Source: Leidyana gryllorum EB-2025a (Eukaryota; Protista; Apicomplexa). From it: a stretch of DNA of 64,000 nt. Below the pieces are notes generated by a model that did no database searches, was not told the origin of the DNA, and saw only the letters and a program-made list of their open reading frames with translations. Numbering within the stretch: position 1 is the stretch's first letter; every line of letters starts with the position of its first letter. Shown here in pieces: positions 4,801 through 62,758 of the stretch. Where the stretch lies: the NCBI GenBank assembly GCA_048772705.1, contig JBLWGC010000202.1:1-64000 (forward strand). The letters are read 5' to 3'. Both the position numbers and the translations under genes were made by a program.

Positions 4801-5930
4801 CTGGGTTCAAGAGTTTTGTGGAGAATCTGTTGGGACCACTGGGAATGGATTACGATAAGATTCTGCGCAGTGGACTGTACAATAGTCTGCTGAGTAATCT
4901 ATTTGCACTGCCTCTGATCCAAGAGCTGTTCTCGAGCCACTATAGTCCTCATCCACTAAGTTTGGTTCCGAGCACTGTCACAGAAGACACTTTGGCCGAA
5001 TGGCGGAAACGGTGTCCGAACCCCCCAATTTGGGACTATCGGGCGCTCGAATTGCCTCTGCGGACCCGTTTATTAGCCGTAATGCGTCGCGTATGGGGTG
5101 ATAGAGTTCGGGAATTGGTGTTGACCAAACACGAGCAGTTGCTGTGTGAGTTGGTCGAGATGGAATGGAAATTGGAGAGGGACACTTTGAGGGCGTTCGG
5201 TGATAAATGGCCCCTCACTCTGACGTGTCAGGAGGACATCCCGTGCATCGCGGCTGTCTCTGCCTTTTATCTCCAATTACTGCAAAGCGGGTCTCCCTTA
5301 ATGATTGCTGAGTTGAAAGATCGCGAAGATTTGGTCAGTCAGATGCTCAAACTTGTAGAGTCGGATGAGGCGTATGTGTTGAAGGTCGACTTTGGCGGTG
5401 GCCGCAGCCGAAGCAGTGACGCGGCGATCGAATTGCGTCGATTCGGAATTCAACTTTTATCAGCGACGCTGACTTTGGCCAGTCCAAGCGGTATCCGGGA
5501 GCTACTGAGATCTGCCGATAACGAATTGGCAAAGTATCTCCTCTCTCAGTATCAAACAATCGCCGAAGCCAATCTCAGTGGCACTCTGACTGGTCTGGCT
5601 GAAGAAGACGACACTCTCGCTACCTTAGCCACCAATACTCTCACACAGATCGTCATGAACCATCCGGATTTGGGAGAGGTCGTCAAGTGTAATACCGACA
5701 AACTCAAGCAGACACTGCAAGTTTGCCATAGATACTTCTCAGCCCTTCTGACCAAAACCCGTAAGTCAACACTGACGACAGTGACAGTTCCCCAATTGCT
5801 GTCTACAGAGATGAAAGAAGCCACCAATGAGCGACTGAAGTCCATAGACGGTTTGATAAATCTAATCGACCGGGTCAGTCTCCCCTCAGACAAATGGATT
5901 CCGTGGCCGCTGACCGCGAGAGAAGACTGA
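1824..5930 (+). CDS. Large multi-exon helical (HEAT/ARM-like) hypothetical protein
   Basis: Consecutive Leu-rich ORFs joined by GT-AG introns at about 2015-2151, 2362-2420, 3422-3555, 3969-4028 and 4122-4186. Confidence 0.6.
2026..2145. repeat. Intronic (TGAC)n and (CAC)n microsatellites
   Basis: Two tgactgactgac runs and a caccaccacc run are directly visible. Confidence 0.9.
3434..3543. repeat. Intronic (CA)n array with a duplicated unit acacacacacccaatcccccttaa
   Basis: Directly visible inside intron 3422-3555. Confidence 0.85.
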
Positions 5931-6195
5931 AGATTGAAGATTGAAGATTAGAGGTTTAGTCGACAATAATTGTATCTCTTTATATCCCTCCTCTCCGCTC
6001 CTCACCCTCAAGAAACAACAACAACTTGGGTGATAGCGCTGTGAGTATATATTTATTAAAGGCAAGAATTTCGGAGGAGTGTTCGTTTCTGAAAGGGGAG
6101 AGACGACGCATTCATTCAGTCAGCACGGAGAACGAACGAACGAACGGACGGACGCGAAAGAACGAACAGAGAATCCCAATAAATCGTTGTCAATC

Positions 6196-7207
6196 TCAGG
6201 AGAACATTTTGGAGTACGCGGCTTTGTCTGCTTCGTTTTGTTTCTTCTCCAATTCCTTGGCTTGTTCGTATGCCTTGCGGATCTCAGCGTTCTTTGGCTC
6301 CTTGACAGCGGCAGCCCGGAGATCTGCCTTGGCTTCAATGGGCATCCCATTGTTCATTCGTGCCACACCCCGACGATAGAGTGCCTTGACATTATCCGGC
6401 TCGTCGGTCAGAACGGCAGTCGCCGCAACAGTCGCCTCAATCCAAGCTCCCAACTTGATGTATGCGCTGTGACAGAAACAAAACAATTATCTTCGATCTC
6501 ACTCGACTCTGTGAGAACTCACTTTGCCAAATTCAAATTGAGGCTCAGACGCAGTGCCTTTCCAGCAGCCTTATCATTTTCGGGCCAGTCGTCCAGTTGA
6601 CCCAACAGACCAACACCCTCCTTGTACTGCAGGACGGCTTCTTTGTTGTCGCCCTTCTTGAAAGCATCGTTTCCAGCAACTTTCAGAGCTCCAGCCTCGT
6701 TCAACCGCTCGTCAGTCGTCATTTCCCACGCCTCCTTCTTCTTAGGCGCAAAGTGCAACAGCTCCACCTCGAACTGCGCAACATTTCTACACACACAAAC
6801 GCACACACGACACTCACCACCAAAGTAGCGTTGGGAGGGATGGTAGGGGGGGAGCCGGACACGCCATAAGCAAAGTCAGGTGCCAGAGTCAGAATGGCTT
6901 TCTCGCCTTTGCACATCGACAAGACACCGACATCCCATCCCTTGATAACTTGTCCTTTGCCCAGGACAAATTTGAACGGGTCGCCGCGATCCACAGAGGA
7001 ATCGAACTTGGTACCGTCAGTCAGCTTCCCGGTGTAATGTACTGTGACCTCATGGCCGTTCTCGGGGCGGCTGAAAATCAAAAGTGTCTATGTTACCCAC
7101 CATCCTATCGACCAGACTCACTTGTCAGCCTGACCCTCAACCAAAATCTCCTTGACAACCTTTCCGTTGCCCAGCAGATCAATCTTCTCACCAATTGGGG
7201 CGCTCAT
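6196..7207 (-). CDS. FKBP-type peptidyl-prolyl isomerase with TPR domain (FKBP35-like), 4 exons
   Basis: FKBP domain [48 protein letters not shown] motifs KVAGNDAFK and NVKALYRRG. Start [11 protein letters not shown] at 7207. Confidence 0.93.
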
Positions 7208-8306: not shown

Positions 8307-10300
8307 TTAAACTGTGCCAACGACATCCTCCCCGGCTTGAGTAAAAACTTCTTTGTGCAAACTGGGCGGACACACAGTCGGCAGCGTCACAGGAACATCC
8401 AGATACTCCAGGTCTTCAAACCTTTGATCCAAAATCATGCGACTGAGCCACCATGCATCTGAAGTAATGACGCCGACAGTGCCTAAAACCCCCCCCAGAG
8501 AACTCTGAGCCTCCTTCAGTGTCCCTTCCAGCATGTCAGAATACCACTGACTGATGATCGTCCTGGGCAAGTTCGTTGAATACATAAATGGGAGGTGGAC
8601 AGCCGGAGGAGAAGGACATTTCCATTGCAAGTATGCCCACTTGTCGCCATCCTCAAGTGAGTGAGCCGTCAGATACGTATCGATCTCAACAGCCGACCAC
8701 CCGATGGATTCCAGCACAGCCCGGAGAGTGGCATCGGTATAGAGTCCGGAGACAAGCTCCAATTGCACCTTAGGCCACGGATATTGCAGAAGGGCTGCCG
8801 CTTGGAGGCCGAAACGGATTCGAAGGCCTTTCCGTCGCCAAACAGAGTGCCCGACCAAAATCCAATAAGCCAATACCGCGAGATCCGAAGCTATCCCGGT
8901 AACACCGACATATTGAATTTGACAGCTCTCAATCACACGCTGGAGCGCGTCCGGTGACTCACTTATTCCAGCATACAGGCACAGCACTTTGACACAATCG
9001 GGATGCCAACGTGGGGAGCTCGTCCCTTTAGACAGAGCTTCGACGAGCGTCCATCCCTGCAGAGGTAATTCGATCCGCTGCAGATTCTCAAACGGCAGAG
9101 CTTTGATGCACTCTTCCGTTACATATGGGAAGGCGCTGTCGTTCACACACATAACCTGTGTGACCTCTGACCAATCCACCGGGTGCTCCAGGCCGCTCCC
9201 ACTCAAAAACGCTGTCTCACCACTCACCAACCCAATATTCGTGGGAGGGAGCACAGCGGGAGGCTCGATTAGTGGGAGTGCCTGCCATTGAACAGGCGGG
9301 GACTCCAGATTCCGAGTTCGGGCTAAGCGGAACCATCCGAGGCTCGCACGCACAGTCAGAGGCGATCGCACGATCACTCGGGTTTCGTAGACACACCGTT
9401 GAGCCTGGAGAAGTGCCACAGACGGACTCGATTGTAGAAAAGCGCGACACAGCGGATGCATATCGCGCTCTCGATCGGTCCATTCTTTCTTAAGATAGTC
9501 CACCAGCCTCTTTGACCCCCTATACTCTGTGATCACTGAAGCCTTCACATTACCCACCTCGCGCAAGTTGGCCACACGCCTGATGTTGCTTCAGCGTGCC
9601 ATTGCAAAACATCGGTCGCCCAATTGTATGCTTTCGGTAGGAATGCCGCCAGGGAGGCGGATTTCTTCCAACCCCCGTCAACCACTGAAGAGGGAGAGTC
9701 AGAGATTTTGAAGATCCAATACTTGAATTCGGGTTTCGTCACCGCCACAATAATGTCATTGGGGCCTTCACCCACTGCCCGATGGAGTGCCTCCGCCATA
9801 GAGTGGCGAATAAAGGGAAGCTGCTTCCTACTGACAGCCAAAAACTCCAACATCGGTGCGTCGATATGCAGTGACACTTCAGACAGGCTGGAAGCGTGCA
9901 AGTCCAGATACTTCAGTGCGGGGAAAGTGAGAGTTTGGGACCGCAACGGCCCTTCACTGCTAAAAGTCACCATCAGGGTCGCCTTCGTCAGTGTTGGCAA
10001 ACCCCATTTGCACATCTTGTGCAATAGATCGAGAATGCGGACATCGTGCTTATGCTCGGGCTCTTCGATCCACTTGATTGATTCCAAGCGTGGGCACGAT
10101 CTGTGCACCCACCCTTCGAACCACGAGACGTCGCGCAGCCAAGACCACAGGTTTCCTGTAAAATCAAGTGTTTGTGACACCAACAAAAAATGTCCCGAGT
10201 GAAGAAGGTCGTAAGTCCGTTTACATATCCCCGCCGTTCTGGTCAACTCCCATAGGGGTAAGAATCTCAGAATTTGAGGCCAGCATTGGTCAATCAGCAT
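8307..10300 (-). CDS. F-box protein with LRR-like region (two ORFs, probably joined near 9530-9575)
   Basis: N-terminal LIDQCWPQILRFLPLWELTRTAGICKRTYDLL fits the F-box consensus. CPRLESI, LPTLTKA and FPALKYLDL are LRR-like. The junction between the ORFs is unresolved. Confidence 0.55.
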
Positions 10301-42415: not shown

Positions 42416-45400
42416 TTAATTGGCGGAGAGTTTTTGAGAGATGACTTCGCTAATGTGCTCCAAAATGGATGGGAAGGGAGGGAAAGGTCCTTCCAGGGAG
42501 CTTGCAACATGCTCACCAATAGATTCGATGTGGATGGTCGGAATGTCTTGCCAGCCACCAAGTTTGTGACCCAGGTGACGAATGAACTTCAGAGGAGTGA
42601 GATGTTTCCACTCAGTAGTCTCCTGGAGGGAGATGATAGTCTGGTTGACTGTCATCAAGAACTTCTCAGGGGCCATGTAAGCGGGTCTGAACACATCCAA
42701 CTTCTGGAGGAAGTAGACGGCTGCATCAGAAAGGCTCCAAATCCACTTGTTAAGGTGGTGGCCATCGAAGATGGGGGAGTGATGATGATGATCCTTTTCG
42801 ACGGGGAAGGCACCAGGGTATCCGGGCCAGACATCACCAGGGAAGCCGGGGTAGGGCCACTCACCAGGGTAGCCGGGCCACCAGCCGTTGGTCCAGGCTT
42901 CACGAGGCAAGATAGTGGTCGGCTCAACTTGAACAGCTGGCTCAATCACCTCAACAGGCTCAATAACCGCAGGCTCCTTGATGGTCACAGCAGGCTCACG
43001 GACAATGGTTGTTCTCGCGTCGTAAGGGCCCCAGGGCAATCCACCCCACGGGTAACCACCGTAGTATCCACCGTGATGGTGGCCATGTTTCTCAACAGGC
43101 ACAGGATACACAGGGGGGCGGTAGATGGCAGGAGCCACCGGGGTGGTGGTCACTACCTCAGCAGGAGCGGCAACTGTAACAGCTGGCTCAACTACACTAA
43201 CACCGCCAGCGTAGGGATAGACATTACCATAGGGAACACCTCCGTACGGGACACCAATGGGCCAGTAGGGGGTGCTATGGTGATGGCCATGCTTGCTGGG
43301 GTACACCGGGGCGGGAAGGATACGAGGAACAAGCGGTTCAATCACAGTGGTCACAGGGGTCGTGGTGACGGTTGGGGTGGCGACACGGGGAGTCGGGGGG
43401 GCGACAGGAGTGGTCTGCTCGACAGGGGTGCGGTTGTCAAAGGGGACGACAACATCGGTGTGCTCATGGGAAGTCTCGAAGGCTCGGGCTTCTTCCTCGC
43501 CAACTGACTCGCCTTCGCGGGCATCCTCGCGAGCATCCTCGCGGAGGACAACACTGACGATGGGGAAGGTACCATGGCGGGGGATCACCACCTGGTAGCT
43601 ACCGGAGGCGCTTGTCATGACGGGGAAAGTGCCGAGGCCATGAACGGTGACAATTGGGGTACCGTTGAAGGATCTAGTGACCGGGAAGTAGCCGAACTCC
43701 GGAAGGTAAAGGTAGTCAACGGGAACGGGCCCGTCGAGCAACGCAACACCTTGGATACGGACAGTACCGAAACGAGGAAGGAACACAGTCAAGGTTCCAT
43801 CGACGTTGGCAACGACCGGGATCGATCCAAGACCTTGAATGGTGACACTGATGGTTCCAGCTGTAGAAACAGTAAGTGCAGCGGTGCCATGACCGGGAAC
43901 GTGTACCAGGGCGCGGGCGGGTGCCAAAAGATCAACATCCAGCTCGCCAATACCCGGAACGTTGACAGCCAAGGCGCCAGTCAGGGTGGTGTACACAGGT
44001 TGACGTCCATACTGAGGCAAGTCCACAGTGAAGTAGCCTCGAGTGTCAATTCTCAAGCCAACATCACCGAAGCCCGGGACGTGAGCCACCGCCATGGTGG
44101 TGAAGGGGTTCACGGGGATAGTTCCCACACCAGGGATGGTGACGAAAGCCTGACCAGTAGACATAGTAGTCACCGGCAGAGTTCCGAACTCAGGGATGAA
44201 GAACGAGAGCTCTCCAACAGCAGATGCACTCAGATGGAAAGTGCCATATCCTGGGATGGTGACACAACCAACAGAGGTTGGGAGCTCGTACAGCGGAACA
44301 CCAGGGGGGAACGGATAGATTTCGGGGGTCTGGTCTCCAACGGCCTCGATTGTACCGACAGTGATGGGGGCAGTGATCACAGGGTTAGCATTTTGGTTGG
44401 CGTTCTGATCGTTGGCAAGGTTGTTGTCGATGGATGCAGTGACAGTGGTATCTCCAATAAGAGAGTTAGGTCCTGCCACCACAGTGGTGTCGAAAATGTT
44501 GTAGGCCTGTTGAGTCACTGGCTGACTATTCTTTTGGGCAGCTGCGGTATCGATTCCGGGGCGGGTCCTGTAGTTGTACGCCTCGGTGTCCCAGTCATCC
44601 CAGTGTCCATCAGTGTAGCCTTTGTGAATGTGCGACCAGGCAGCATCCCACAAGTGACTAAGAGGACCGTTCCACGCATCAGTAGACCAGCCTTCCTTGT
44701 CCAAGTAGGGTCCCCACGGCAACAGCGGCCACGGGTAGCTACGGAGGTGCTCACAGACTTCATGAAGGGCTTTGAGGAAGAGCGGAGTGCCCAACCACGG
44801 GAAGCGAGCGCTAGCAAGTGTGAGATCACGAGCAACAGCACCGAAACTTGGGACATCGAGGGTATATTCGTCAACCCAGGCATCACGAAGACGATCAACA
44901 AACTCCACGGGTGAAGCGGCGGCGAAGTTGCCCTCATCATCAATGTAGTATTTGTCAATCACTCCACGGACAGTGTCGAAGAAAACTTCCTGGGGCATAT
45001 GAGCTGGCTTCAAGCCGAACAGAGCAGTCATGAAGGGGCCACAGACGAAGGGGAAGTACGGAGAGATGGGTAGGTTGTGGTGGTGACCGAGAGCATAGCC
45101 AAGGGTGTTACCAGCGGTGAAGCCAGCGGCACCAGAGGTTATACCAGTCAGGCCAAGGGCAGCAAGGTTGTGAAGATGCTGGAAGGGTCTGGGGACCAAG
45201 GCACTGACAACGTCAGCACCGAGGGCGATTTGACCTCCGAGGACATCACCCATCAGGGTTGATGCAGCACTCATTCCGCTGGCAGCAGCGGCCAAAGCAC
45301 CAGCTTCGGCTGCAGTACGACCGGCTAGATGAGCTCCAAGGCCGGCGGTAACCGCCGCAGCATCTGCTGCAGCAGAAACCAATCCGGATCCGACATCAGC

Positions 45401-45502
45401 GGCGTTTTCCAGGGCCTGACCAGCCACATGAATGGGGCGGTCAAGGTGAAGGAACCCCTGAGTTCCAGTGGTGACAATTCCGACCAAAAATAGCTTTAAC
45501 AT
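42416..45502 (-). CDS. Secreted 1028-aa repeat protein (12 beta-hairpin repeats; His/Tyr/Pro-rich segments)
   Basis: Signal peptide MLKLFLVGIVTTGTQG, intronless, strong codon bias that produces long antisense ORFs. Confidence 0.85.
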   Translation of the reverse strand: MLKLFLVGIVTTGTQGFLHLDRPIHVAGQALENAADVGSGLVSAAADAAAVTAGLGAHLAGRTAAEAGALAAAASGMSAASTLMGDVLGGQIALGADVVSALVPRPFQHLHNLAALGLTGITSGAAGFTAGNTLGYALGHHHNLPISPYFPFVCGPFMTALFGLKPAHMPQEVFFDTVRGVIDKYYIDDEGNFAAASPVEFVDRLRDAWVDEYTLDVPSFGAVARDLTLASARFPWLGTPLFLKALHEVCEHLRSYPWPLLPWGPYLDKEGWSTDAWNGPLSHLWDAAWSHIHKGYTDGHWDDWDTEAYNYRTRPGIDTAAAQKNSQPVTQQAYNIFDTTVVAGPNSLIGDTTVTASIDNNLANDQNANQNANPVITAPITVGTIEAVGDQTPEIYPFPPGVPLYELPTSVGCVTIPGYGTFHLSASAVGELSFFIPEFGTLPVTTMSTGQAFVTIPGVGTIPVNPFTTMAVAHVPGFGDVGLRIDTRGYFTVDLPQYGRQPVYTTLTGALAVNVPGIGELDVDLLAPARALVHVPGHGTAALTVSTAGTISVTIQGLGSIPVVANVDGTLTVFLPRFGTVRIQGVALLDGPVPVDYLYLPEFGYFPVTRSFNGTPIVTVHGLGTFPVMTSASGSYQVVIPRHGTFPIVSVVLREDAREDAREGESVGEEEARAFETSHEHTDVVVPFDNRTPVEQTTPVAPPTPRVATPTVTTTPVTTVIEPLVPRILPAPVYPSKHGHHHSTPYWPIGVPYGGVPYGNVYPYAGGVSVVEPAVTVAAPAEVVTTTPVAPAIYRPPVYPVPVEKHGHHHGGYYGGYPWGGLPWGPYDARTTIVREPAVTIKEPAVIEPVEVIEPAVQVEPTTILPREAWTNGWWPGYPGEWPYPGFPGDVWPGYPGAFPVEKDHHHHSPIFDGHHLNKWIWSLSDAAVYFLQKLDVFRPAYMAPEKFLMTVNQTIISLQETTEWKHLTPLKFIRHLGHKLGGWQDIPTIHIESIGEHVASSLEGPFPPFPSILEHISEVISQKLSAN

Positions 45503-52079: not shown

Positions 52080-52448
52080 CTAAGGGAAGTAAGGACCGAA
52101 TCCCTGGCCGATGTAGTTGGGTCCGCCGTATTGAACGTTCTCGTTGTCGCCGAGGACGTCGAGGTGAATGTTGCTCAGGATTCCACCATCGTCCCGCGGG
52201 TAGCGGCCAGAGCCGATATAGTTGTAACGTCCAAACTGGGTGTTCCTCTCGTCGCCCAGAACGTTGGCCGAGATTCCACTCAGCACCCCCTGGGTCGAAT
52301 AGGAGTTATCACCGAGACCCGGCCAGTTCCAGCCCAAACCCGCAGGCGTCCGACCGGCGGTGGCCAGACCGGCAGGTGTCATGACGGGTTTGTCACAGTG
52401 TGCCAAGGCCGGGGAGGCGAGCAACAAACCAGTGAGGAATCTCAACAT
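52080..52448 (-). CDS. Small secreted protein, family member 1 (paired QxGxxN repeats)
   Basis: Signal peptide ending SPALA/HC. Repeats NTQFGRYNYI and NVQYGGPNYI. Confidence 0.85.
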   Translation of the reverse strand: MLRFLTGLLLASPALAHCDKPVMTPAGLATAGRTPAGLGWNWPGLGDNSYSTQGVLSGISANVLGDERNTQFGRYNYIGSGRYPRDDGGILSNIHLDVLGDNENVQYGGPNYIGQGFGPYFP

Positions 52449-52795
52449 CTTTTAGATAAATAATGAATATATCAGCTCGAGTGCTCACGTCTCTCTGCCG
52501 GAGGAATGTCTGACGGTCAATTGCCGAGAAAAATCGGTGATTTTCTCTCCCCTTCCCACCCCACAGCGGAAAGAAACCCACTGACTCCGGTCGGTAGATT
52601 ACGAAGCCGCCCCTGGGACAGATTGACCGACGACCACTCTTAGAGCAATAATAAATCTTAGCCTCCAATACAGAGACAACAACTACCACTGTTCCGAGTC
52701 AGGAGAGCGAGAGGGAGACGACGTGTGCTCCTCCTCATCCTCAGACCACAAAGTCGAGCATTAATTGAGATGTGTAGAGTGGGTTTGATGAGACA

Positions 52796-53167
52796 TCAGA
52801 AATCCCACGGGTCCGCACCCGCGAACCAGGCCGCGGGACCCCCGTACTGTGTGTTGTGATAGTCAGACAGCAAAGTGACATCGATGTTATCGAGAAACCC
52901 ATTGTCGAATCCATTTCCACGCTGATCGATCAGATTGTGACTGCCAACCTGTGAGTTGTAGTTGTCTTCGAGAATGTGGAGACGTAAATTGTCCAGGACC
53001 TGGGGAGTGTAGGCGCTGCGGTCTCCTTCTTCTCCTTGGGTACTCATCGGTGGAGGACGAGGAAATCTCGCGACGGTGTAGGGAGCGTTCAGAACCGCCG
53101 GGGGACCGTAACAGTGAGCAAACACCGGCGTCGCCACAGAGAGACCAGCGATAATGAGGCCGAACAT
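52796..53167 (-). CDS. Small secreted protein, family member 2
   Basis: Signal peptide ending PVFA/HC. Repeats NSQVGSHNLI and NTQYGGPAAW. Confidence 0.85.
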   Translation of the reverse strand: MFGLIIAGLSVATPVFAHCYGPPAVLNAPYTVARFPRPPPMSTQGEEGDRSAYTPQVLDNLRLHILEDNYNSQVGSHNLIDQRGNGFDNGFLDNIDVTLLSDYHNTQYGGPAAWFAGADPWDF

Positions 53168-53537
53168 TTCCGAAACGCTCGCTGTCTCCTTCTCTTCTCT
53201 TCTCTGTCCTCTGTGTTAAGATGAATCTATTTTTCTTTCCCATCCCAAAGGGGGGGGAGCGGTGAGAGGTGGGTGAAACAGACATCCCTCCTGCCGGGAG
53301 AGCGTTACCGCCTCTCCCTCATTATTTGTGGCATTAATCGTTGATCGATAAACTGGACTTAAAATAACGTTCATTTGGGCTCATAAATAGACAGAGATCA
53401 AACTGTCAAAGTATTCGACAGCCAAAGAGCGATGAATATTGCGATATCAACACGCAGCGTTAACAACAGTCCCATAATCTTGTCGCCCCCGGAGTGAGTG
53501 ATACTTCGTTCCCTTGGCGACAAAGAGAGATCCGCGC

Positions 53538-53912
53538 TCAGAAGAGCCCGCCGTACCCGCCGCGACGGCTGTACCAGTTGGGTCCACCATACTGATAGTT
53601 GTAGTTGGCCTCCAGAGCTTCAATGTCGAGATTGCTCAGGATCCCGCCACCCCAGCCATTGCCCCGGCGTTGCTTGATGTAATTGTATCGACCGAACTGA
53701 CTGTTTCTGTTCTGTCCAAGAAGTCCGAAGTAGATGTTATCTCCAATGCCCTGAGTGGATCGCCCGTCGTCGGCTTCCTAAACGGCGGGCCGACCCACAC
53801 GCGGACCGAACAACTGAGGTGCGTAACCAGCAGTAGTGACTGGAGCACTAGGACCGGTGCAGTGCGCCAAGGCGGGCGATGCTACCAAGAGGCCGACAAG
53901 GACCTGAAGATT
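53538..53912 (-). pseudogene. Family member 3, with in-frame TAG and no intact ATG
   Basis: Manual translation: VLVGLLVASPALAHC..GRPAV*EADDGRSTQG..NSQFGRYNYI..GGILSNLDI..NYQYGGPNWY..GLF*. TAG at 53778-53780. Confidence 0.75.
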
Positions 53913-54591
53913 GTTGATGATATTTTTCTCGTTGTCACTGTGCGTGCTGCAACTCTGAATCCAACTTTTCTTTCCTGACCGGCGTCTCTGGATCCCGCTG
54001 TATTGGGAGGGAAGGGTTTCCCAGAAAGAATAATTGTGACGCGAACAGTCTTCCACCCGCCGAAGCGGTCTGAAAGCACAGCACAACACAACACAACATA
54101 TTCACCGTAATCGCAAATAACAAAGTCTAATATAAAACACGTTCGCTCCCATAATGTCAACTGCTAACAGATCAACTGGCACACTCACACACTCGCGCGC
54201 CTAAACCCACGACCCCCCCCACACACACACACACACAAAGTCCCATACACACACACACAAGTGAGACTTAAGTTTCGCAGTCTGGTTGTAAGCAGATCTC
54301 AGTTGAGGGATACTGTACGGCCTTTTAAGTGTTGGGGAGGGGAAAGTTTGGTGTCTCCCAAGTACAGGGAGGACCTTTTGGTCGTCCGACCCGTCGTTTC
54401 GGATGTGATCCTGCTCGAGGGTGGGTAGAGGAGACTCTCGGGATTTCCGGTCCTCGCTCAGCGGGGCAATGTGGACATATAGGAGTGATAATTGGTTATT
54501 TAATTGAGAGTTCTGTCGATACTTTAGCTCATGGACACACATCTCCACCACCCAAGGAGCAATAACAATAAAGCCAATATTCAGTATATGT

Positions 54592-54770
54592 TGAGCGGTC
54601 AGGCGCAGTGAGGCAAAACGCGAAGGCAATGTTATGTCGCCGACATCCTTTTAGTCTTTTGTAAATAGATCAGAGCTAGTTGATAACTAATGAGCGACAC
54701 GCCTATGTTGAGTAAGCCTATAGGAACCCCCGCAGCCTCGGAGGTTAACGTGAGCCATTCACACGGCTCA
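54592..54770 (+). repeat. 5' LTR
   Basis: TGAGCGG...GGCTCA, identical to 59343-59521. Confidence 0.95.
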
Positions 54771-57700
54771 GCTGGGGGCTGTTCTGGGAACCACGAGGCT
54801 GTGCTGTTGGAGTTCCTAGCTAACGACGAGAGGTTCCCCCGAGAACCACATGAGGACGACGTGGTGGAACAGCTCAATCGGAGAGCCAAGTTCCTCAACT
54901 TCCTCAACCTCGCTCCATTCGACCCGCCCAACGAGAGAGCGTTCGAAGACTGGGTCGACGCAGCGGCGGCGCAAATCAAGAGATTCGGACTCTGCTCCGA
55001 ACTCTTCAGAGATGCCTGGGCTCTGGTGGCAACGCCGAATGTAGCGGCAACCCTCCGTAGCCTACCGGCGGGACTCCAGTACGAGGAGATGGTCGAGAGA
55101 GTGGCGAAGAGACACTTCCGCCACTCCGACTACGTAGAGGAGCTCGAGTTAGAGATCGCTGCGGGAAAGAGAGCGGGGACAGTGCCGGATGCGGTGGCGT
55201 GGATGCGTTCGGTCTGCAGGAGATTCGTCCGAGTGAGAGACCGTCGCCAACACGACTCCCTGCTCACCGAGGGAAGGTTGCGGATGCTCTTCAAGAGAAG
55301 TTTACCCCTCGATGTGCTCGAGAGATTAAGCTATATGCCCAACCTCGACTCGCTCACGGCCTTAATGGACGGGGCTGAGTTCGCCGAAGCTGAGTGTGCT
55401 AAGAAGAGAGCGCGGACGGGTGTCCCGCTGTTTACGGCAGAGCCTCCGGCGACTGATGAGTCGATGGAAGAGAAAACGGCGGAGCCGCCCAAGGCGCCGG
55501 CCGATACCCCCAAGAAGGAGGTGGAGAAGCCTCCCTGCTTCAGGTGTGGGTTGAAGGGTCACCACTCGAAGGACTGCGAGTACAAGGAGAAAAAGTGCGA
55601 GCATTGCGACAAGAAAGGTCACGCCGCGACCACGTGTAGGGCGCTAGTAAAGCGCGATCCGAAGTCGCAGAGGATCAAGCTTCGTGTAATGGAGACCCGG
55701 GCAGGTCACGTGCTTCAGTCTAAGGAGCCGTATTCAGCCGAAGAGAAGATCGTAAGCGCGGAAGAGCTGTTGGAGATCTTGCGAAGTCGAGCAGCGAAAG
55801 TTAGAGAGCGTAAAGCGAAGCATTACCGAGAGCTCAAGGAGGCCGCCAAGAAGAAAGCAGCGGAAGAGGAGAAAGCGGACGCCAAGGTGTGCGAGGCCGA
55901 GGACTCGTCGAGCGAGACCGACGATGAAGGAGTCCTCGAGGAGACCTGCCGCCTGCTCAAAGATTACCTTGGCGAGAGAGAGGTGTATCGCTGCTCGCCG
56001 AACGGGTTCGGAAAGGCTTTCCGGATGCCCGTAAAGATCAACGGAGTAGAGTTCGAGGCGATAGTCGACACAGGAGCGGCTTTCAGTGTCTGCGGGCCTT
56101 CGTTGCGTAAGAAGTTCGGGTTAAGGGCTACCGGTGATACGGTAAACTTCGCCGGGCTGGGTACCGCGAGGGGCCGGAAGCTCGAACCTGTAAAGTTGGA
56201 GATTGGAGGGGTTGGCTTTGAGCAATCGTTTTGGGTAGTCGAGACGCATCATGACCAGTTACTAGTAGGTATGGACGCGTTGAAGACCAGCGGGCTGTTG
56301 CTGGACCCTCTCGAGGGCCAGTTACTGCCTAGGAGGGTCGAGGCGCTGATGGTTGAGCTTACGGAGGAAGAGAAGCGAGCCAATGCGGCTAAAGACGTCG
56401 TTACAGGCTACGAGATAGGGGCTACCGACGAAGAAAAGAAAGCCGAGGCTCGAGCTACGTTTCATGCGATCACGAGTCACTTGAGTCCGGAGAGGGTCTC
56501 TGAGCTGTGGGACATCTGGTGGGAGTATAAAGATGCCTGGCTGGACCCGGTGCCGGGGCGAATTAAGGTCAGCACCGCCAGCTTCGAGGTTTACGGGAAG
56601 CCGTATAGGGCAAGGTTGAGACCGCTGACCGCGGAGTTGAAGGAGGAGTTAGATAAGCAACTCCAGAGTATGCTCAAGGCTGGTGTAATCAGGCCGAGTA
56701 AGAGCCCGTGGGGTGCAAGCCCCTTATTTGTAAAGAAGAAGACTGGGGAGTGGCGGATTGTAGTAGATTACCGCCCTCTCAACGCGCAGATGGTACCGGA
56801 CGCGTACCCCCTGCCTCACGTGTGGGACCTGTGCCAATTGGCAGCCGGGCACGAGTGGTACTCGGCTCTAGATTGCGCCAACGGTTTCTGGAACGTAAGG
56901 CTAGAGGAGGGGAGTATGCCGTACACCGCGATGATCACCCACGCTGGCACTTACGAGTACACGGTGCTCCCGTTCGGAGTGCGTAATTCTCCGAGCGAGT
57001 GTCAACGCGCGTTAGATCTAGCCTTCGGTTCCGTCCGTTGCGCGACGAGGTACATTGACGATATCACCATTTGGGGTGACACGAAGGAGGAACACGACGC
57101 GACGCTGCGAGAGGTACTGGCGGCGGCGAGGGAAGCAGGGTTCTTCTTCAAGCTCAAGAAGACGGAGCTGTACAGGCGAGAGGTCAACATGCTAGGGTTT
57201 AGAGTAAGTCGGGAAGGCATCAGGCCGAGTCCGAAGAAGGTGCAGGGGATCGTAAACGCACCTGCACCCACGAATTTGAGAGAGCTACGGGAGTTCTTGG
57301 GGATGAGTAGCTACTTGAGAAAGTTCGTGCAGGATTACAGCACGATCGCGGAGCCACTGACGTCTCTCACCAAGCAGAGTCACCCCTTCGAGTGGGGTCC
57401 CGAGCAGCAACGAGCGTTCGCGCTAGTTAAGAAGGGAATCGCCGAAGCGGCCTTACTGGCCTATCCTAAGGGCCCTGGGCTGTTCGTGATTAACACGGAT
57501 GCCTGTAAGAAAGGGGTCGGGGCGGTGCTGATGCAAGCCCAGGAGGGGACGCTGGTGACCCTGGAATATGCTAGTAAGAAGTTGACTGACGCGGAGACCA
57601 GGTGGAGCACGTCGGAACAGGAAGCATTCGCAGTGGTGTGGGCTGTAAAGAAGTTCCACGACTACATCCGCACCCGCAAGACCTTCGTAATTACGGACCA

Positions 57701-59321
57701 TGCCGCGCTGAAGTATTTCAACGCGATGCAGGATGGCAAGTTCCTGCGCTGGTCGCTGTTCTTACAGCAGTACGACTTGGAGTTCATCTACCTAGAAGGG
57801 GAGGACAACGTCGTGGCCGATTACTTGTCGCGGCACCCAGCAGATGACGAAGGCGGGATAGATATGGAAGAGTATTGCGTGCCGCTCTTCGAGGCTGAGG
57901 CAGTCGCGCAGATCTGGCCACCCCCGTTGCTCCCGTCGATCCCTCAGTTACGAGAGGCGTCTAAATCGATCCCTCCGGGAGAGGAGAATCTGATAAGAAA
58001 AGGGCCGGAAGGCCTGTATTACAAAATAGGGAGTACGAAGCTGTGGATTCCACCAGACTGGCGAGAGACCCTCTTATACTGGTTCCACTGCGGGAAGGCC
58101 GGGATGCACGTGGCGGTAAACCGGATGCTGAGGCTTATGCGGCAGTGGGTCTACTGGCCAGGGATGTCCGAGCAGGCCGCAGAGTATGTCAGGGCGTGCA
58201 TCGTGTGTCAGCGACTCCGTAAGCCGACGAAGCGGGCCCTCGTGGGCATGTTGACTAAGCCGTGGCCGTGCGAGATAGTCAGTATCGACCTCGTCGGGCC
58301 GAGACGATGGAAAGGGGAAGCTTACTGGTGGGTGGTGATCGTGGATCATTACTCGCGATTCATGGTAGTGGAGGTACTGTGGGAGCCCCCAACGGCCAAG
58401 AGCGTGGCCAAGGCCCTCCGGGAGAAGTGGCTCTATACCTTCCAGGTCCCTACCGCGATACTTACCGACAGAGGATCGGTGTTCCAGGGGGCTGCCTTTC
58501 GCGAGCTTGTGGACATCGAAATGGGGTGTACCCACTACTTCACCACGGCTCATTACCCGCAAGGCAACGGGATCAACGAGGCCTCGCACGAGTTTCTCAA
58601 GCGGGGCGTTGACGCTCTGGTAGCCGAGGGCACCGCGGAGCCGCTGGAGACTCTGGTCGCGTCGCTAGTGATGGCCTATAACGCCACGCCCCATGTAGCT
58701 ACGGCGCGGTCGCCGTTCTACATGTTGATGGGGTTCGAGCCGGCGATCGCCGGGTGGCAGGCGCTGCGACAAGACAACAACGAGGCTAGAGTCGCGCAAC
58801 AGCGCGCCCACCGGTTGCAAGGGTACGTAGGATGGGTGTTAGCGCAGCGAACACGGGCGCTGGAGGCGCAACCCGCCAAGGCGATAGCAGTAGGAGACTG
58901 GGTCCTGACCGAGGCGTCCAAGGAAGCCCGAGACGCTATGCTGCAAGCAGATCTCCACGGCCCCACGTCGTCTAGCTTCCGCCACTCCCTGCCGTGTCGC
59001 GTGGTGCGAGTCCGGGACGGTAGTGCCACAGTGGCGCACCTGGGCCGGGCCGAGGAGCTGCGTACAGTAGCGCTCCGGAAGCTCACCCCACTGCCCGCTG
59101 CTATCCCCGGGTCACTCTTCCAACTTACCGTCGACCACGTGGAGAAGAACGAGGGGCAGTGGCTACGAGAGAGGCCTTTGAATCGGGGCTGGCCCAAGGA
59201 CGTTACGGTGGAGGATGTCGTCTTGCAGGGGCGAGCGCGCGTGGAAGATCCGCTACGACCCACGGCGGACGGCCCGCCCGCTAAGAAGCGCCGCGCGCCC
59301 TCTAGAGTGGTAATCGATTGA
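54690..59321 (+). CDS. Gag-Pol polyprotein (2 CCHC knuckles, aspartic protease, RT, RNase H, integrase)
   Basis: CFRCGLKGHHSKDC, CEHCDKKGHAATTC, VDTGA, RIVVDYR, LPFG, YIDD, TDAC..EQE..TDH..ADYLSR, H..H..CIVC, SIDL..TDRG..GINE. Confidence 0.97.
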   Translation: MSDTPMLSKPIGTPAASEVNVSHSHGSAGGCSGNHEAVLLEFLANDERFPREPHEDDVVEQLNRRAKFLNFLNLAPFDPPNERAFEDWVDAAAAQIKRFGLCSELFRDAWALVATPNVAATLRSLPAGLQYEEMVERVAKRHFRHSDYVEELELEIAAGKRAGTVPDAVAWMRSVCRRFVRVRDRRQHDSLLTEGRLRMLFKRSLPLDVLERLSYMPNLDSLTALMDGAEFAEAECAKKRARTGVPLFTAEPPATDESMEEKTAEPPKAPADTPKKEVEKPPCFRCGLKGHHSKDCEYKEKKCEHCDKKGHAATTCRALVKRDPKSQRIKLRVMETRAGHVLQSKEPYSAEEKIVSAEELLEILRSRAAKVRERKAKHYRELKEAAKKKAAEEEKADAKVCEAEDSSSETDDEGVLEETCRLLKDYLGEREVYRCSPNGFGKAFRMPVKINGVEFEAIVDTGAAFSVCGPSLRKKFGLRATGDTVNFAGLGTARGRKLEPVKLEIGGVGFEQSFWVVETHHDQLLVGMDALKTSGLLLDPLEGQLLPRRVEALMVELTEEEKRANAAKDVVTGYEIGATDEEKKAEARATFHAITSHLSPERVSELWDIWWEYKDAWLDPVPGRIKVSTASFEVYGKPYRARLRPLTAELKEELDKQLQSMLKAGVIRPSKSPWGASPLFVKKKTGEWRIVVDYRPLNAQMVPDAYPLPHVWDLCQLAAGHEWYSALDCANGFWNVRLEEGSMPYTAMITHAGTYEYTVLPFGVRNSPSECQRALDLAFGSVRCATRYIDDITIWGDTKEEHDATLREVLAAAREAGFFFKLKKTELYRREVNMLGFRVSREGIRPSPKKVQGIVNAPAPTNLRELREFLGMSSYLRKFVQDYSTIAEPLTSLTKQSHPFEWGPEQQRAFALVKKGIAEAALLAYPKGPGLFVINTDACKKGVGAVLMQAQEGTLVTLEYASKKLTDAETRWSTSEQEAFAVVWAVKKFHDYIRTRKTFVITDHAALKYFNAMQDGKFLRWSLFLQQYDLEFIYLEGEDNVVADYLSRHPADDEGGIDMEEYCVPLFEAEAVAQIWPPPLLPSIPQLREASKSIPPGEENLIRKGPEGLYYKIGSTKLWIPPDWRETLLYWFHCGKAGMHVAVNRMLRLMRQWVYWPGMSEQAAEYVRACIVCQRLRKPTKRALVGMLTKPWPCEIVSIDLVGPRRWKGEAYWWVVIVDHYSRFMVVEVLWEPPTAKSVAKALREKWLYTFQVPTAILTDRGSVFQGAAFRELVDIEMGCTHYFTTAHYPQGNGINEASHEFLKRGVDALVAEGTAEPLETLVASLVMAYNATPHVATARSPFYMLMGFEPAIAGWQALRQDNNEARVAQQRAHRLQGYVGWVLAQRTRALEAQPAKAIAVGDWVLTEASKEARDAMLQADLHGPTSSSFRHSLPCRVVRVRDGSATVAHLGRAEELRTVALRKLTPLPAAIPGSLFQLTVDHVEKNEGQWLRERPLNRGWPKDVTVEDVVLQGRARVEDPLRPTADGPPAKKRRAPSRVVID
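54773..54790 (+). promoter_or_regulatory. Primer-binding site, probably for tRNA-Pro
   Basis: TGGGGGCTGTTCTGGGAA lies 2 nt after the LTR and resembles the tRNA-Pro PBS TGGGGGCTCGTCCGGGAT. Confidence 0.75.
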
Positions 59322-59331
59322 GGGACTCGGC

Positions 59332-59340
59332 GGGAGGGGA
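59332..59340 (+). promoter_or_regulatory. Polypurine tract
   Basis: GGGAGGGGA lies 2 nt before the 3' LTR. Confidence 0.8.
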
Positions 59341-59342
59341 GC

Positions 59343-59521
59343 TGAGCGGTCAGGCGCAGTGAGGCAAAACGCGAAGGCAATGTTATGTCGCCGACATCCT
59401 TTTAGTCTTTTGTAAATAGATCAGAGCTAGTTGATAACTAATGAGCGACACGCCTATGTTGAGTAAGCCTATAGGAACCCCCGCAGCCTCGGAGGTTAAC
59501 GTGAGCCATTCACACGGCTCA
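59343..59521 (+). repeat. 3' LTR
   Basis: Identical to the 5' LTR. Confidence 0.95.
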
Positions 59522-59624
59522 TGTACACGTTAAATGCAGGGAAGTGTGCGGTGTTCATGACAGTAAGAGAGTTCCGACAGTAGCAGTGAGCGGCGATGAA
59601 TGGGGCTGCGATATCTGATGGAGT

Positions 59625-60101
59625 TTAGCCCCCGATGAGGGCGTCGTTGCCTCGGCCGAATTGACGTCTGCGTCTCTCTTTGCCGAGGGTGATGATATCC
59701 TCGTTGTTGAGGAGATTCGCACCGCTGGAGCGAGTACCGCCCCGAATCCAGGCCCGATTGCCGTCACCAAACTGAGAGTCGTCAACTTCGTCTCCCAAAC
59801 CGATAATCGAGCCGTCGTTCGCCACGTTCAAGCCTTGTGAACTTCGATCTCCGAACAAGTTGGCGACCGGTCCATCGTTGAGAGCAGAAATGGGTGCGTT
59901 GATCAGTCCAATGCTTTGGGGATTGTAGTAGCCATCATCCCACAACCAGCTGCGGCCGTAGGAGGTGTAAGGATAGCCACCCCAGAAACCCTGAGCAGAG
60001 CGAGCCCCGGCAAAAGTGGGGGCTGTGGGCTGGGAGCAGCCGTACCAGAAGGTGGCCAGCGCCGAAGGGGCGAAGAGTAGCAAACCTCCAATAGCTTTCA
60101 T
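59625..60101 (-). CDS. Small secreted protein, family member 4 (most curlin-like repeats)
   Basis: Signal peptide ending PSALA. Repeats DSQFGDGNRAWI and RRQFGRGNDALI; RSAQG and RSSQG motifs. Confidence 0.8.
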   Translation of the reverse strand: MKAIGGLLLFAPSALATFWYGCSQPTAPTFAGARSAQGFWGGYPYTSYGRSWLWDDGYYNPQSIGLINAPISALNDGPVANLFGDRSSQGLNVANDGSIIGLGDEVDDSQFGDGNRAWIRGGTRSSGANLLNNEDIITLGKERRRRQFGRGNDALIGG

Positions 60102-60618
60102 TATTGCAAGTCGTAACTGTTTGTTTGCGTGCCACCGGCCGATTTTTTCCCTCACCCGTTATCACGTGGGTATTCCTTCTGCCATACTCTGCCCCACAGA
60201 GGGCAAACCGCTGACACCCACCCTTTCAGTATATTCTCAGACAATCCGTGTCATCAGCAGAGTCGCCGCGATCTAATATCAGTCTAAGCGATCGCAACCG
60301 ATCTTCGGCACGCAACCTCACCGGACGGCCGAAATACCCTCGAACCGCTCGAACCGCTCTGTCCCAAAAGTCGTCGGCCCCCATCACAACCGTTGGGCTC
60401 AGAAACTCGTAGAGATTACCTCTTTACCTCGAACAATTTGCACTTTCCACACAGTCAATTAGATTCCCCACACACACCGGTTTCGGCACATTGGGACAGG
60501 GCTCATGGCGAAGACGAGTCCCTATCGACGAGAAAGCATCAAATTGCACACAGTCACTGAGCAGAGAGTGTCCATTGCGCTGAGAGATAATGTCGCGCGC
60601 CACGAATCCTGCTGCCGA

Positions 60619-60927
60619 CTAATACCACCGGGGCCGCCGGTAGTATGGGCGTCGGTAGTAATAAGGCGGTCTCCGATAGTAATAAGGTCTGCCATAGCCA
60701 TACCATCCATACGGATCATCGCCATAGTAATACGAATAGGGATAAGACCCATCGGGGTAGATTATAATATCTTGCGGCGATCGCCCTCCACCGACCCCTG
60801 CCGCTGTCTGGGGTTGGTACACACCCGCTGGGCCTATGGGCATCGGTACCAGCGGGGGAGAGTGCGCATGGGAACCAACCGCACAAGAGACAGTGAGCGA
60901 GGCCAATAGAGTGGATGAGAATCTCAT
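60619..60927 (-). CDS. Small secreted Tyr/Arg/Pro-rich protein
   Basis: Signal MRFSSTLLASLTVSCAVG. Tail YPYSYYYGDDPYGWYGYGRPYYYRRPPYYYRRPYYRRPRWY. Confidence 0.8.
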   Translation of the reverse strand: MRFSSTLLASLTVSCAVGSHAHSPPLVPMPIGPAGVYQPQTAAGVGGGRSPQDIIIYPDGSYPYSYYYGDDPYGWYGYGRPYYYRRPPYYYRRPYYRRPRWY

Positions 60928-61038
60928 CCTGTGGCAAGGGAACCACTGTCTAAGCAGTCGCAAGTTTTCCCCTCAGGCGTCGGCATTGGGTATTCCTCTC
61001 TCTGTGTCCAAAATGTGACGAGATTATTTTCTTCCTAA

Positions 61039-61645: not shown

Positions 61646-62758
61646 TCACTTGGAGGCCAAGAGAGTGGCCCTGGCGGCCTCGAATTCTGCAATTTCTTCA
61701 CCACTCAATTGAAGCTCAAAAACTTTGCCACCCCGAGCGGCTTTCTCTGCACCTTCGAGGATGTGCATCAAGGCGACAATGTACGCTCTGTGAACAGGAG
61801 GTTCGGCTTTCGGGTCAAGGATAGCTTTGGCCAGTCGTCGGTAGAACTCTATGTGCTCTCCACGTGGAAGCGCGTAAGTTTCAGCTTGGAGTGATTTCGG
61901 CTCTTTCGGATTGTCCCCGCGGTACACCACCATTCTGTTCTCCGGATTGATACCAAAGTCAGGGTGGTCGGGTTTCATATCTTGCAGAATCTGTGTCTCC
62001 TGACAGTCCAAGTGCTGAACCTGGGCACTCGCCTCAGTTCCATGCAACGTCAAACGAGCCGCCAACGGCGTACGCACACAAACCGAAGCGTTCACGATGG
62101 CCTGGAGCTCACCATAGTCCAACACTGCATGAGCAAAGTCGTCTGCTTGATCCGCTCCCCGTTGACGTCCGAGCTTTAGAAGAACAGCCTTGGGCAGCCC
62201 AAACAACACTAGCGCTTGATCAATAACATGCGGGCCCAAATCCCACCAAATTCCCGAACATGGCTGGTCGTGTTCACGCCATCGGTCACGGATCTGTGGC
62301 CTCAAACGATCAAAACGACTCTCGTACAACCTTGGCTGACCCAATTTGCCCGTTTCCAACGCATCCTTCACACCCAGAAACTCAGCATCCCAACGTCTGT
62401 TCTGGTAAACACACAGATGCTTTCCTTTACTCTTCGCCAAAGCCACCAACTCTCGCGCCTCCTCAACTGTTTCGGTGAACGGCTTGTCGCACACCACGTG
62501 CTTATCGTTCTCAATTGCCAATTTGGTAAGTTTGTAGTGAGTCAAATTCGGGGTGGCCAACACCACCAAGTCAACCTCGGGATGCGTGCAAGCTTCCTCA
62601 TACGTCGCCACAACAATAGCCTCGGAAAAGTCTGCCAAGACCTTCTCCTTGTTGCTGCTAGCAATCACGTGCAGCTTGAGCTCGGGCACCCGAATGATGT
62701 ATGGGGCGTGCAATGTCTTGCCAGCGAATCCATACCCAACCAAGCCAACGCGTATCAT
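61646..62758 (-). CDS. Gfo/Idh/MocA NAD(P)-dependent oxidoreductase, YdgJ-like, intronless
   Basis: IRVGLVGYG..KTLHAP, TPN.TH, KHVVCDKPF, NRRWD, RPQIRDRWRE, GIWWDLGPHVIDQA. Confidence 0.92.
   Translation of the reverse strand: MIRVGLVGYGFAGKTLHAPYIIRVPELKLHVIASSNKEKVLADFSEAIVVATYEEACTHPEVDLVVLATPNLTHYKLTKLAIENDKHVVCDKPFTETVEEARELVALAKSKGKHLCVYQNRRWDAEFLGVKDALETGKLGQPRLYESRFDRLRPQIRDRWREHDQPCSGIWWDLGPHVIDQALVLFGLPKAVLLKLGRQRGADQADDFAHAVLDYGELQAIVNASVCVRTPLAARLTLHGTEASAQVQHLDCQETQILQDMKPDHPDFGINPENRMVVYRGDNPKEPKSLQAETYALPRGEHIEFYRRLAKAILDPKAEPPVHRAYIVALMHILEGAEKAARGGKVFELQLSGEEIAEFEAARATLLASK

Follow-up and report, generated by a model that had tools for sequence, protein, structure and literature searches.

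A tandem family of small, predicted secreted Q-x-G-x-x-N repeat proteins in an alveolate genome, compared with known amyloid and wall proteins

Known amyloid repeats and wall proteins compared with the cluster

The known walls of apicomplexans are explained by Cys-repeat proteins and dityrosine-linked proteins, and to our knowledge almost no work has been done on the proteins that make up the cyst and spore walls of gregarines. Here we describe a tandem family of small, predicted secreted repeat proteins, encoded by four co-oriented reading frames (g1 to g4) that were located by six-frame analysis on the minus strand at 52080-60101 of a 64-kb window (the whole stretch of DNA analysed, being the first 64 kb of contig C202 in an assembly of 15.5 Mb and 237 contigs). 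Coccidian walls are built from Tyr-rich, proteolytically processed, cross-linked secreted proteins, and Eimeria SWP1 carries a Cys near its signal cleavage site (PMC4776368). Curlin has N-x-h-x-h-x-Q strands (h, hydrophobic; N or S at the first position), with repeats of 23 +/- 5 aa and 4-62 repeats (PMC10192328). HET-s has two pseudo-repeats of a 21-aa motif (PMC4518210), RHIM an invariant Gly followed by Asn-x-apolar (PMC4262963), and FapC three Asn/Gln/Gly layers per chain with a repeat numbering that runs to 37 (PMC12392863); stacking of imperfect repeats, each forming one layer, is also seen in HET-s (PMC4518210).

The initial annotation had described the four frames as co-oriented paralogs, each with a signal peptide, a Pro/Gly-rich spacer and two imperfect repeats of about 30 aa. 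All four share the minus strand (Table 1), but g3 is broken and g4 is only a probable distant relative. Signal peptides were called from hydropathy and the -3/-1 rule, and each of g1-g4 has, as claimed, a hydrophobic N-terminus with a small-x-Ala site at its end, the remainder of each protein not being hydrophobic enough for a membrane helix. His-Cys directly follows this site in g1-g3 and the Cys lies five residues later in g4; the spacer of g1-g3 is rich in Pro, Gly and Ala, whereas that of g4 is rich in aromatic residues. The internal repeats are above chance (0 of 500 shuffles reached the observed score in each of g1-g4), with a period of 34-37 aa rather than about 30 (in g1, anchor Gln residues Q71 and Q106, period 35). 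The Q-x-G-x-x-N motifs quoted in the annotation are present in g1-g4, except that the final Asn is missing from the second repeat of g2, and all seven matches to Q-[FYVIL]-G-x-x-N in the six frames of the window fall within these genes. The repeat domain of g2 is acidic (net -8); the first repeat of g4 is acidic and the second basic, and both carry Q-F-G-x-G-N-x-A-x-I, corresponding to the curlin arc and following strand. No further family copies were found elsewhere in the assembly at the sensitivity of the searches made.

Like curlin CsgA/CsgB (PF07012), the family is small and predicted to be secreted, with imperfect repeats and paralogs side by side, and it contains curlin arc 1, Q-x-G-x-x-N-x-hydrophobic (PMC10192328), with Q-x-G-x-G-N-x-A-x-I occurring twice in g4. 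The likeness to curli and RHIM seen in the annotation holds for this arc but does not extend to the curlin strand, period or repeat number, or to the RHIM tetrad: the family repeat is 34-38 aa long and present in one to three copies, the kernel N/S-x-h-x-h-x-Q has no match in all 8 proteins, and, unlike curlin, the family has a predicted eukaryotic secretory route and a single Cys. PF07012 matched none of these genes. On a CsgA/CsgB repeat profile, g4 was the only significant scorer (16.5 bits, 0 of 500 shuffles), with g1-g3 and the proteins of locus L008, from a second organism, at 0.1-5.3 bits (g2, 5.3 bits, 4 of 500 shuffles); membership in curlin, RHIM or rodlin was not borne out, the one signal being that of g4 on the curlin profile.

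The RHIM tetrad, which we take to be I/V-Q-I/V/L/C-G, had no match in the 8 proteins, and PF12721 matches none of these genes, although the RHIM feature of Gly followed by Asn-x-apolar is found in the family at columns +2, +5 and +7. RHIM and HET-s/HRAM resemble the family in the Q-h-G-x-x-N-h core, in two pseudo-repeats per chain and in opposite charges in register (g4). However, RHIM and HRAM occur in the cytosol as motifs joined to NLR, kinase or HeLo (or death) domains, whereas the family proteins are stand-alone with signal-type N-termini and lack the hydrophobic residue before Gln that is present in the RHIM/HET-s type. The HET-s HRAM shares two repeats with the family but has a period of 21 rather than 34-38 aa, and neither Pfam nor PDB gave a match.

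The best architectural analogue is Pseudomonas FapC/FapB, which are secreted and have few (typically three) imperfect Asn/Gln/Gly repeats. FapC repeats are presumably in the high 30s in length. The FapC/FapB repeat consensus, of the type G-h-h-N-x-a-a-G-x-x-N-Q-Q-x-N, is different, and the family has neither the long inter-repeat linkers nor a fap operon; no FapC/FapB match was obtained in the Pfam, NCBIfam and PDB searches, which did not include a dedicated FapC profile comparison. Streptomyces rodlins and chaplins are alike in being small secreted spore-coat proteins in paralog clusters. A superficial resemblance to rodlin in h-x-h-L-x-D-x-x-N-x-Q was tested and rejected: a profile of 153 rodlins (NF041022) gave no more than 1.5 bits, hhalign gave a probability of 0.36% (E 0.17, with 3 of 60 shuffles as high), and the rodlin Cys pattern is absent. 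Chaplin and hydrophobin had no Pfam or NCBIfam match (E up to 10, HMMER filters), in searches that included no separate test for repellents. Possible proteolytic processing and a Cys near the cleavage site are shared with coccidian Tyr-rich wall proteins, although the repeat family is only moderately Tyr-rich, and apicomplexan Cys-repeat oocyst wall proteins of the COWP/OWP type are unlike it. Judged by its sequences, the family may work like curlin, RHIM, HET-s, rodlin or FapC while being a member of none.

Relatives, repeat pattern and shared upstream element

A profile search of 1.84 billion representatives returned a single match, P0001 (E 4.5e-15), which lies on a 2.5-kb Logan contig from run ERR10900105 together with two more co-oriented family genes. 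This locus (L008) is a tandem trio in a second organism, its proteins having two, three and one repeats, a variation expected of modular rungs. The L008 proteins match g1 and g2 with E values of 1e-4 to 1e-15 (Z = 1e6), and identity of the 27-column repeat between the two organisms is 33-42%. Neither g1-g4 nor the L008 proteins matched a Pfam or NCBIfam family (E up to 10, HMMER filters), the PDB sequence search gave chance matches only (best E 0.016, 6gv5), and ESM Atlas gave no usable match. JGI metagenomes gave no match, exact look-ups found no entry in the collection, and no syntenic locus was found via the neighbouring Sas10 frame. Searches of 5.8 billion proteins, using phmmer with g1 and hmmsearch with A2, also returned nothing; because only targets of 0.55-1.75 times the query length were visible, and even P0001 was missed, this blank says little on longer, shorter or fused kin. 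In a public run (X1, guessed to be RNA), two contigs match the 3′ flanks of g1 and g3 exactly, and a third (470 nt, depth 17), aligning at 53574-53883 of the window with a loose end that translates as N-W-I-S-R-G-W-G-F-stop, represents a diverged family member absent from the assembly, indicating that a further variant exists. The spacing of the two matching pieces of this contig differs from g3 by 32 nt, which is not a multiple of three. The family is real and, within the reach of the tools used, undescribed.

All members begin with a signal-type N-terminus and have one conserved Cys close to the start of the mature chain, followed by a spacer that varies, an (R/Y)-S/T-P/T-Q motif and the repeats, the motif before the first repeat being Y-S-T-Q, Y-T-P-Q, R-S-T-Q or R-S-S-Q among the window genes and R-S-P-Q in each L008 protein. 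Across the family there are one to three repeats per protein, with a period of 34-38 aa, in a repeat domain of 40-107 aa. The 13 repeats share the pattern h-L-D-N/G-h-x-h-x-h-L-x-D-x-Y/R-N-x-Q-h-G-R-x-N-Y-I, in which the anchor Gln is present in 13 of 13, Gly at +2 and Asn at +5 in 12 each, and Asn at -2 and Leu at -7 in 11 each, with hydrophobic columns at -16, -12, -10 and -8 relative to the anchor. The hydrophobic moment of positions -13 to -7 is strand-type (0.53-0.56 at 160-180 degrees compared with 0.11 at 100). Repeat domains contain 14-25% Asn+Gln and at most 5% Pro; aromatic content is 14-18% in g1-g3, with conserved Tyr columns, and 4-7% in g4 and the three-repeat L008 protein. For the g1-g3 repeat domains, pN (0.36-0.47) is lower than pS (0.62-0.71, near saturation) in all pairs. 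No N-x-S/T sequon occurs among 72 Asn residues compared with 7.3 expected (shuffle P 0.0002, a significance inflated by the kinship of the sequences), the genome encodes STT3, and five control proteins have no such deficit. In g4, the inter-repeat register pairs five opposite charges and one like charge (P 0.003-0.016), as expected of stacked rungs.

The g3 frame has no in-frame ATG and contains an in-frame TAG at 53778-53780. These lesions are probably real, as the assembly keeps intact frames of 1543 and 10,887 codons, and g3 has probably become a pseudogene recently. An intron of 21 nt with this TAG at its end is a possible alternative, but would still leave the frame without a start. The position of g4 is less clear, with no pairwise (phmmer) match to any other family member, 3.8 bits on the repeat profile (reached by 27 of 1000 shuffles) and 4.7 bits on a full-length leave-one-out profile (reached by 5-13 of 2000 shuffles). 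The only grouping resolved in trees of repeats and proteins was a separate branch for the g4 repeats (98/98). Resemblance to the other members in signal peptide, position, period and upstream element points to a distant kinship that is likely though unproven, and g4 is regarded as a probable distant relative of g1-g3 rather than a clear paralog.

In the window, 19 copies of the upstream element, R-G-A(4-6)-T, were counted over the two strands (0.02 per 130 nt). Copies precede g1-g4 and gY, a Tyr-rich gene at the head of the cluster (Table 1), as well as two of the three L008 genes, and at 13 other starts or near-start positions the element was found once, at a large secreted repeat gene (42416-45502). 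Its recurrence before g1-g4 and gY is suggestive of co-regulation. In gY, for which no paralog was found (single copy), G-R-S-P-Q precedes a Tyr-rich tail that is 37% aromatic. By composition and plan gY resembles coccidian GAM56, GAM82 and SWP1, a compositional likeness and not a significant sequence similarity, and it is a candidate dityrosine cross-linking wall precursor.

Table 1. Coordinates of the family genes, their upstream elements and adjoining features in the window
Feature	Position	Strand	Description
g1	52080-52448	-	122 aa; predicted signal peptide 1-16, His-Cys, spacer, S-T-Q motif, two repeats
g2	52796-53167	-	123 aa; plan as g1; repeats at Q73 and Q107
g3	53538-~53915	-	paralog, 50% identity to g1; broken in assembly
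g4	59625-60101	-	158 aa; divergent member or analogue; two 37-aa repeats
gY	60619-60927	-	102 aa; predicted secreted, Tyr/Arg/Pro-rich; co-oriented, head of cluster; no repeat domain
Upstream element of g1	52540-52546	-	98 nt 5′ of ATG
Upstream element of g2	53229-53236	-	69 nt 5′ of ATG
Upstream element of g3	53922-53929	-	directly before frame; G-ending variant ~55 nt upstream
Upstream element of g4	60142-60150	-	49 nt 5′ of ATG
Upstream element of gY	61026-61032	-	105 nt 5′ of ATG
Ty3/gypsy LTR (long terminal repeat) retrotransposon	54592-59521	+	intact, young; outside the family; splits cluster between g3 and g4

Proposed stacked-repeat fold and competing explanations

We tentatively propose, with a little less than even confidence, that the proteins are secreted beta-solenoid or cross-beta structural subunits of a family specific to the lineage of a gregarine-like apicomplexan, whose rungs would stack into fibres that belong to the wall or coat of a cyst or spore. 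The common upstream element would switch on the family genes and gY together at the stage of wall or coat building, the spacer may undergo cleavage close to R-S-P-Q, and each secreted repeat would fold as one rung, consisting of a strand (h-x-h-x-h-L), a polar arc with Asp, a second strand (N-x-Q-h), a turn (G-R-x) and a final strand (N-h-I). Stacked in register within and between subunits by Asn/Gln ladders, the rungs would form a beta-solenoid or a cross-beta fibre, in which differently charged paralogs may be mixed. The single Cys and the Tyr residues of the repeats may cross-link fibres to one another and to gY. It is reasonable to read the repeat as a beta-repeat that is secreted and stacks, a reading with indirect support from the conserved Asn, Gln and Gly, the second organism, the variants with one to three repeats, the avoidance of sequons and the charge pairing of g4. 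The Tyr-rich secreted gene and the common upstream element slightly favour a wall or coat; roles in a wall, a mucus trail or an adhesive cannot be told apart.

Several results weigh against this proposal. No significant match to curlin, RHIM, rodlin, any Pfam or NCBIfam family or any PDB chain was obtained, register charges across the family are even (9 opposite and 8 like) with a conserved Asp-on-Asp column, the upstream motif was picked after inspection of these genes, and one copy, g3, is broken and hence dispensable. AlphaFold2 models of the full three-repeat L008 protein and of its repeat domain had pLDDT values of 41 and 37 and a pTM of 0.13, without strands or a fold; with only 6-7 alignment rows, this outcome neither supports nor refutes the fold.

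The predicted disorder is also what is expected if the proteins are disordered wall or coat precursors of the GAM56/SWP1 kind, processed and joined by dityrosine or disulphide links to form an amorphous layer. In that case the repeat would be a short module for binding or sorting rather than the core of a fibre. Such precursors, an explanation we consider somewhat unlikely, would account for the aromatic content and Tyr columns of g1-g3, for the adjoining gY with its aromatic tail and the G-R-S-P-Q that is common to the L008 members, and for a Cys near the signal cleavage site as in Eimeria SWP1 (PMC4776368). They would not account for the aromatic-poor g4 and three-repeat L008 protein, and a strict 27-column repeat with alternating hydrophobics, fixed Asn, Gln and Gly and 33-42% identity between organisms is an unusual constraint for a disordered chain. 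A non-structural role for small secreted beta-rich proteins or peptides (adhesion or lectin-like, host-gut or antimicrobial, or gamont signalling) appears unlikely: small size, a pro-region-like spacer, fast divergence, the loss of g3 and the differing charge of the paralogs are typical of host-facing families, but there are no conserved dibasic sites between repeats, one Cys allows no disulphide-stabilised core, the one-repeat member is too short for a stable monomeric solenoid, and the Pfam and NCBIfam searches turned up no toxin, lectin or enzyme. A release of peptides by kexin-type cleavage at dibasic sites was considered separately and rejected, as the linkers have no common dibasic site.

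True homology to curlin or to RHIM/HET-s, for example by horizontal transfer with g4 as the least diverged copy, is highly improbable. It would explain the score of g4 on the CsgA/CsgB profile and would fit a bacterial-type oxidoreductase nearby in the window, but the Pfam curlin and RHIM models match none of these genes, the defining strand and tetrad, the period and the repeat number are all missing, and for g1-g3, with their low profile scores, this explanation is already largely refuted. Beyond P0001 there are no relatives among the 1.84 billion representatives, and a 10-residue Gly/Asn/Gln arc can converge. A more specific form of the stacked-repeat proposal, possible but doubtful, is a secreted heteropolymeric functional amyloid evolved in gregarines, with co-expressed subunits of one to three repeats, g4 as a divergent, curlin-like nucleator or cap, cross-beta fibres in the gametocyst or oocyst wall, and hardening by the co-regulated Tyr-rich partner. 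No paper on amyloid in the walls of gregarines or other apicomplexans, or on such a system in Apicomplexa, came up in a full-text search of an incomplete literature collection. If true, a cross-beta wall component would be a third building principle of apicomplexan walls and would mean that a eukaryotic parasite has converged on the curli/FapC design; if the amyloid claim fails, the genes are a real but ordinary orphan secreted family.

Genomic setting, insert and other repeat genes

Sixteen alveolin (IMCp) matches above the Pfam cut-off identify the source of the assembly as an alveolate. The genome is compact, has ~53% GC, encodes a polypeptide GalNAc-transferase and contains active Ty3/gypsy elements, features that would fit a gregarine apicomplexan. 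One such element accounts for most of the gap between g3 and g4; with the 4.9-kb insert discounted, g4 lies ~0.8 kb from g3. Its LTRs are 179 nt long and identical (54592-54770 and 59343-59521), with TG..CA ends, and a single frame of 1543 aa (54690-59321) encodes Gag-PR-RT-RH-IN; the PR-RT-RH-IN order and the terminal TG..CA LTRs assign the element to its class. At least five near-identical full copies are present in the genome, with flanking duplications that vary by copy (3 nt in the window, 4 on contig C220, and 5 on C2 and C35), and the first ATG of the long frame sits within the 5′ LTR.

The copy of the upstream element before g1 lies within a near-perfect inverted repeat (52527-52548), with a second copy on the plus strand. 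The large gene that shares the element (42416-45502, minus strand) encodes a predicted secreted orphan of 1028 aa without a Pfam match, containing 20-aa repeats of the form h-x-h-P-G-h-G-x-h-P-h, His clusters and Tyr/Trp/Gly/Pro blocks; from the common element, it possibly belongs to the same wall programme as the cluster. Directly upstream of the cluster, an intronless gene on the minus strand (61646-62758) encodes a bacterial-type GFO/IDH/MocA oxidoreductase.

A giant frame was met in the curlin control search on contig C121 (140115-172775, plus strand). It has 10,887 codons, is Thr/Ser/Glu-rich with a GPI-signal-like hydrophobic tail, and contains, at residues ~2300-6300, 307 copies of S-T-V/A-E-V-T-Q-S-T-D-D/E with an 11-aa period. 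PF07012 matched a 333-aa piece with an E of 3e-32, and 116 times in all, a stronger curlin-pattern match than in the cluster. The repeat fits the curlin strand kernel without the Gly arc, and a second, related repeat block lies downstream. The frame may encode either a giant O-glycosylated mucin that matches by composition or a curlin-like solenoid stalk made of one chain. Directly upstream of it (C121:138300-140200) lie three or more small co-oriented frames whose N-termini are signal-type; two of the frames are Ser/Thr/Glu/Ala-rich with GPI-like tails. Two near-identical tandem frames of ~436-439 codons at C121:176930-180930 resemble the window frame at 8307-9575, which indicates a dispersed orphan family.

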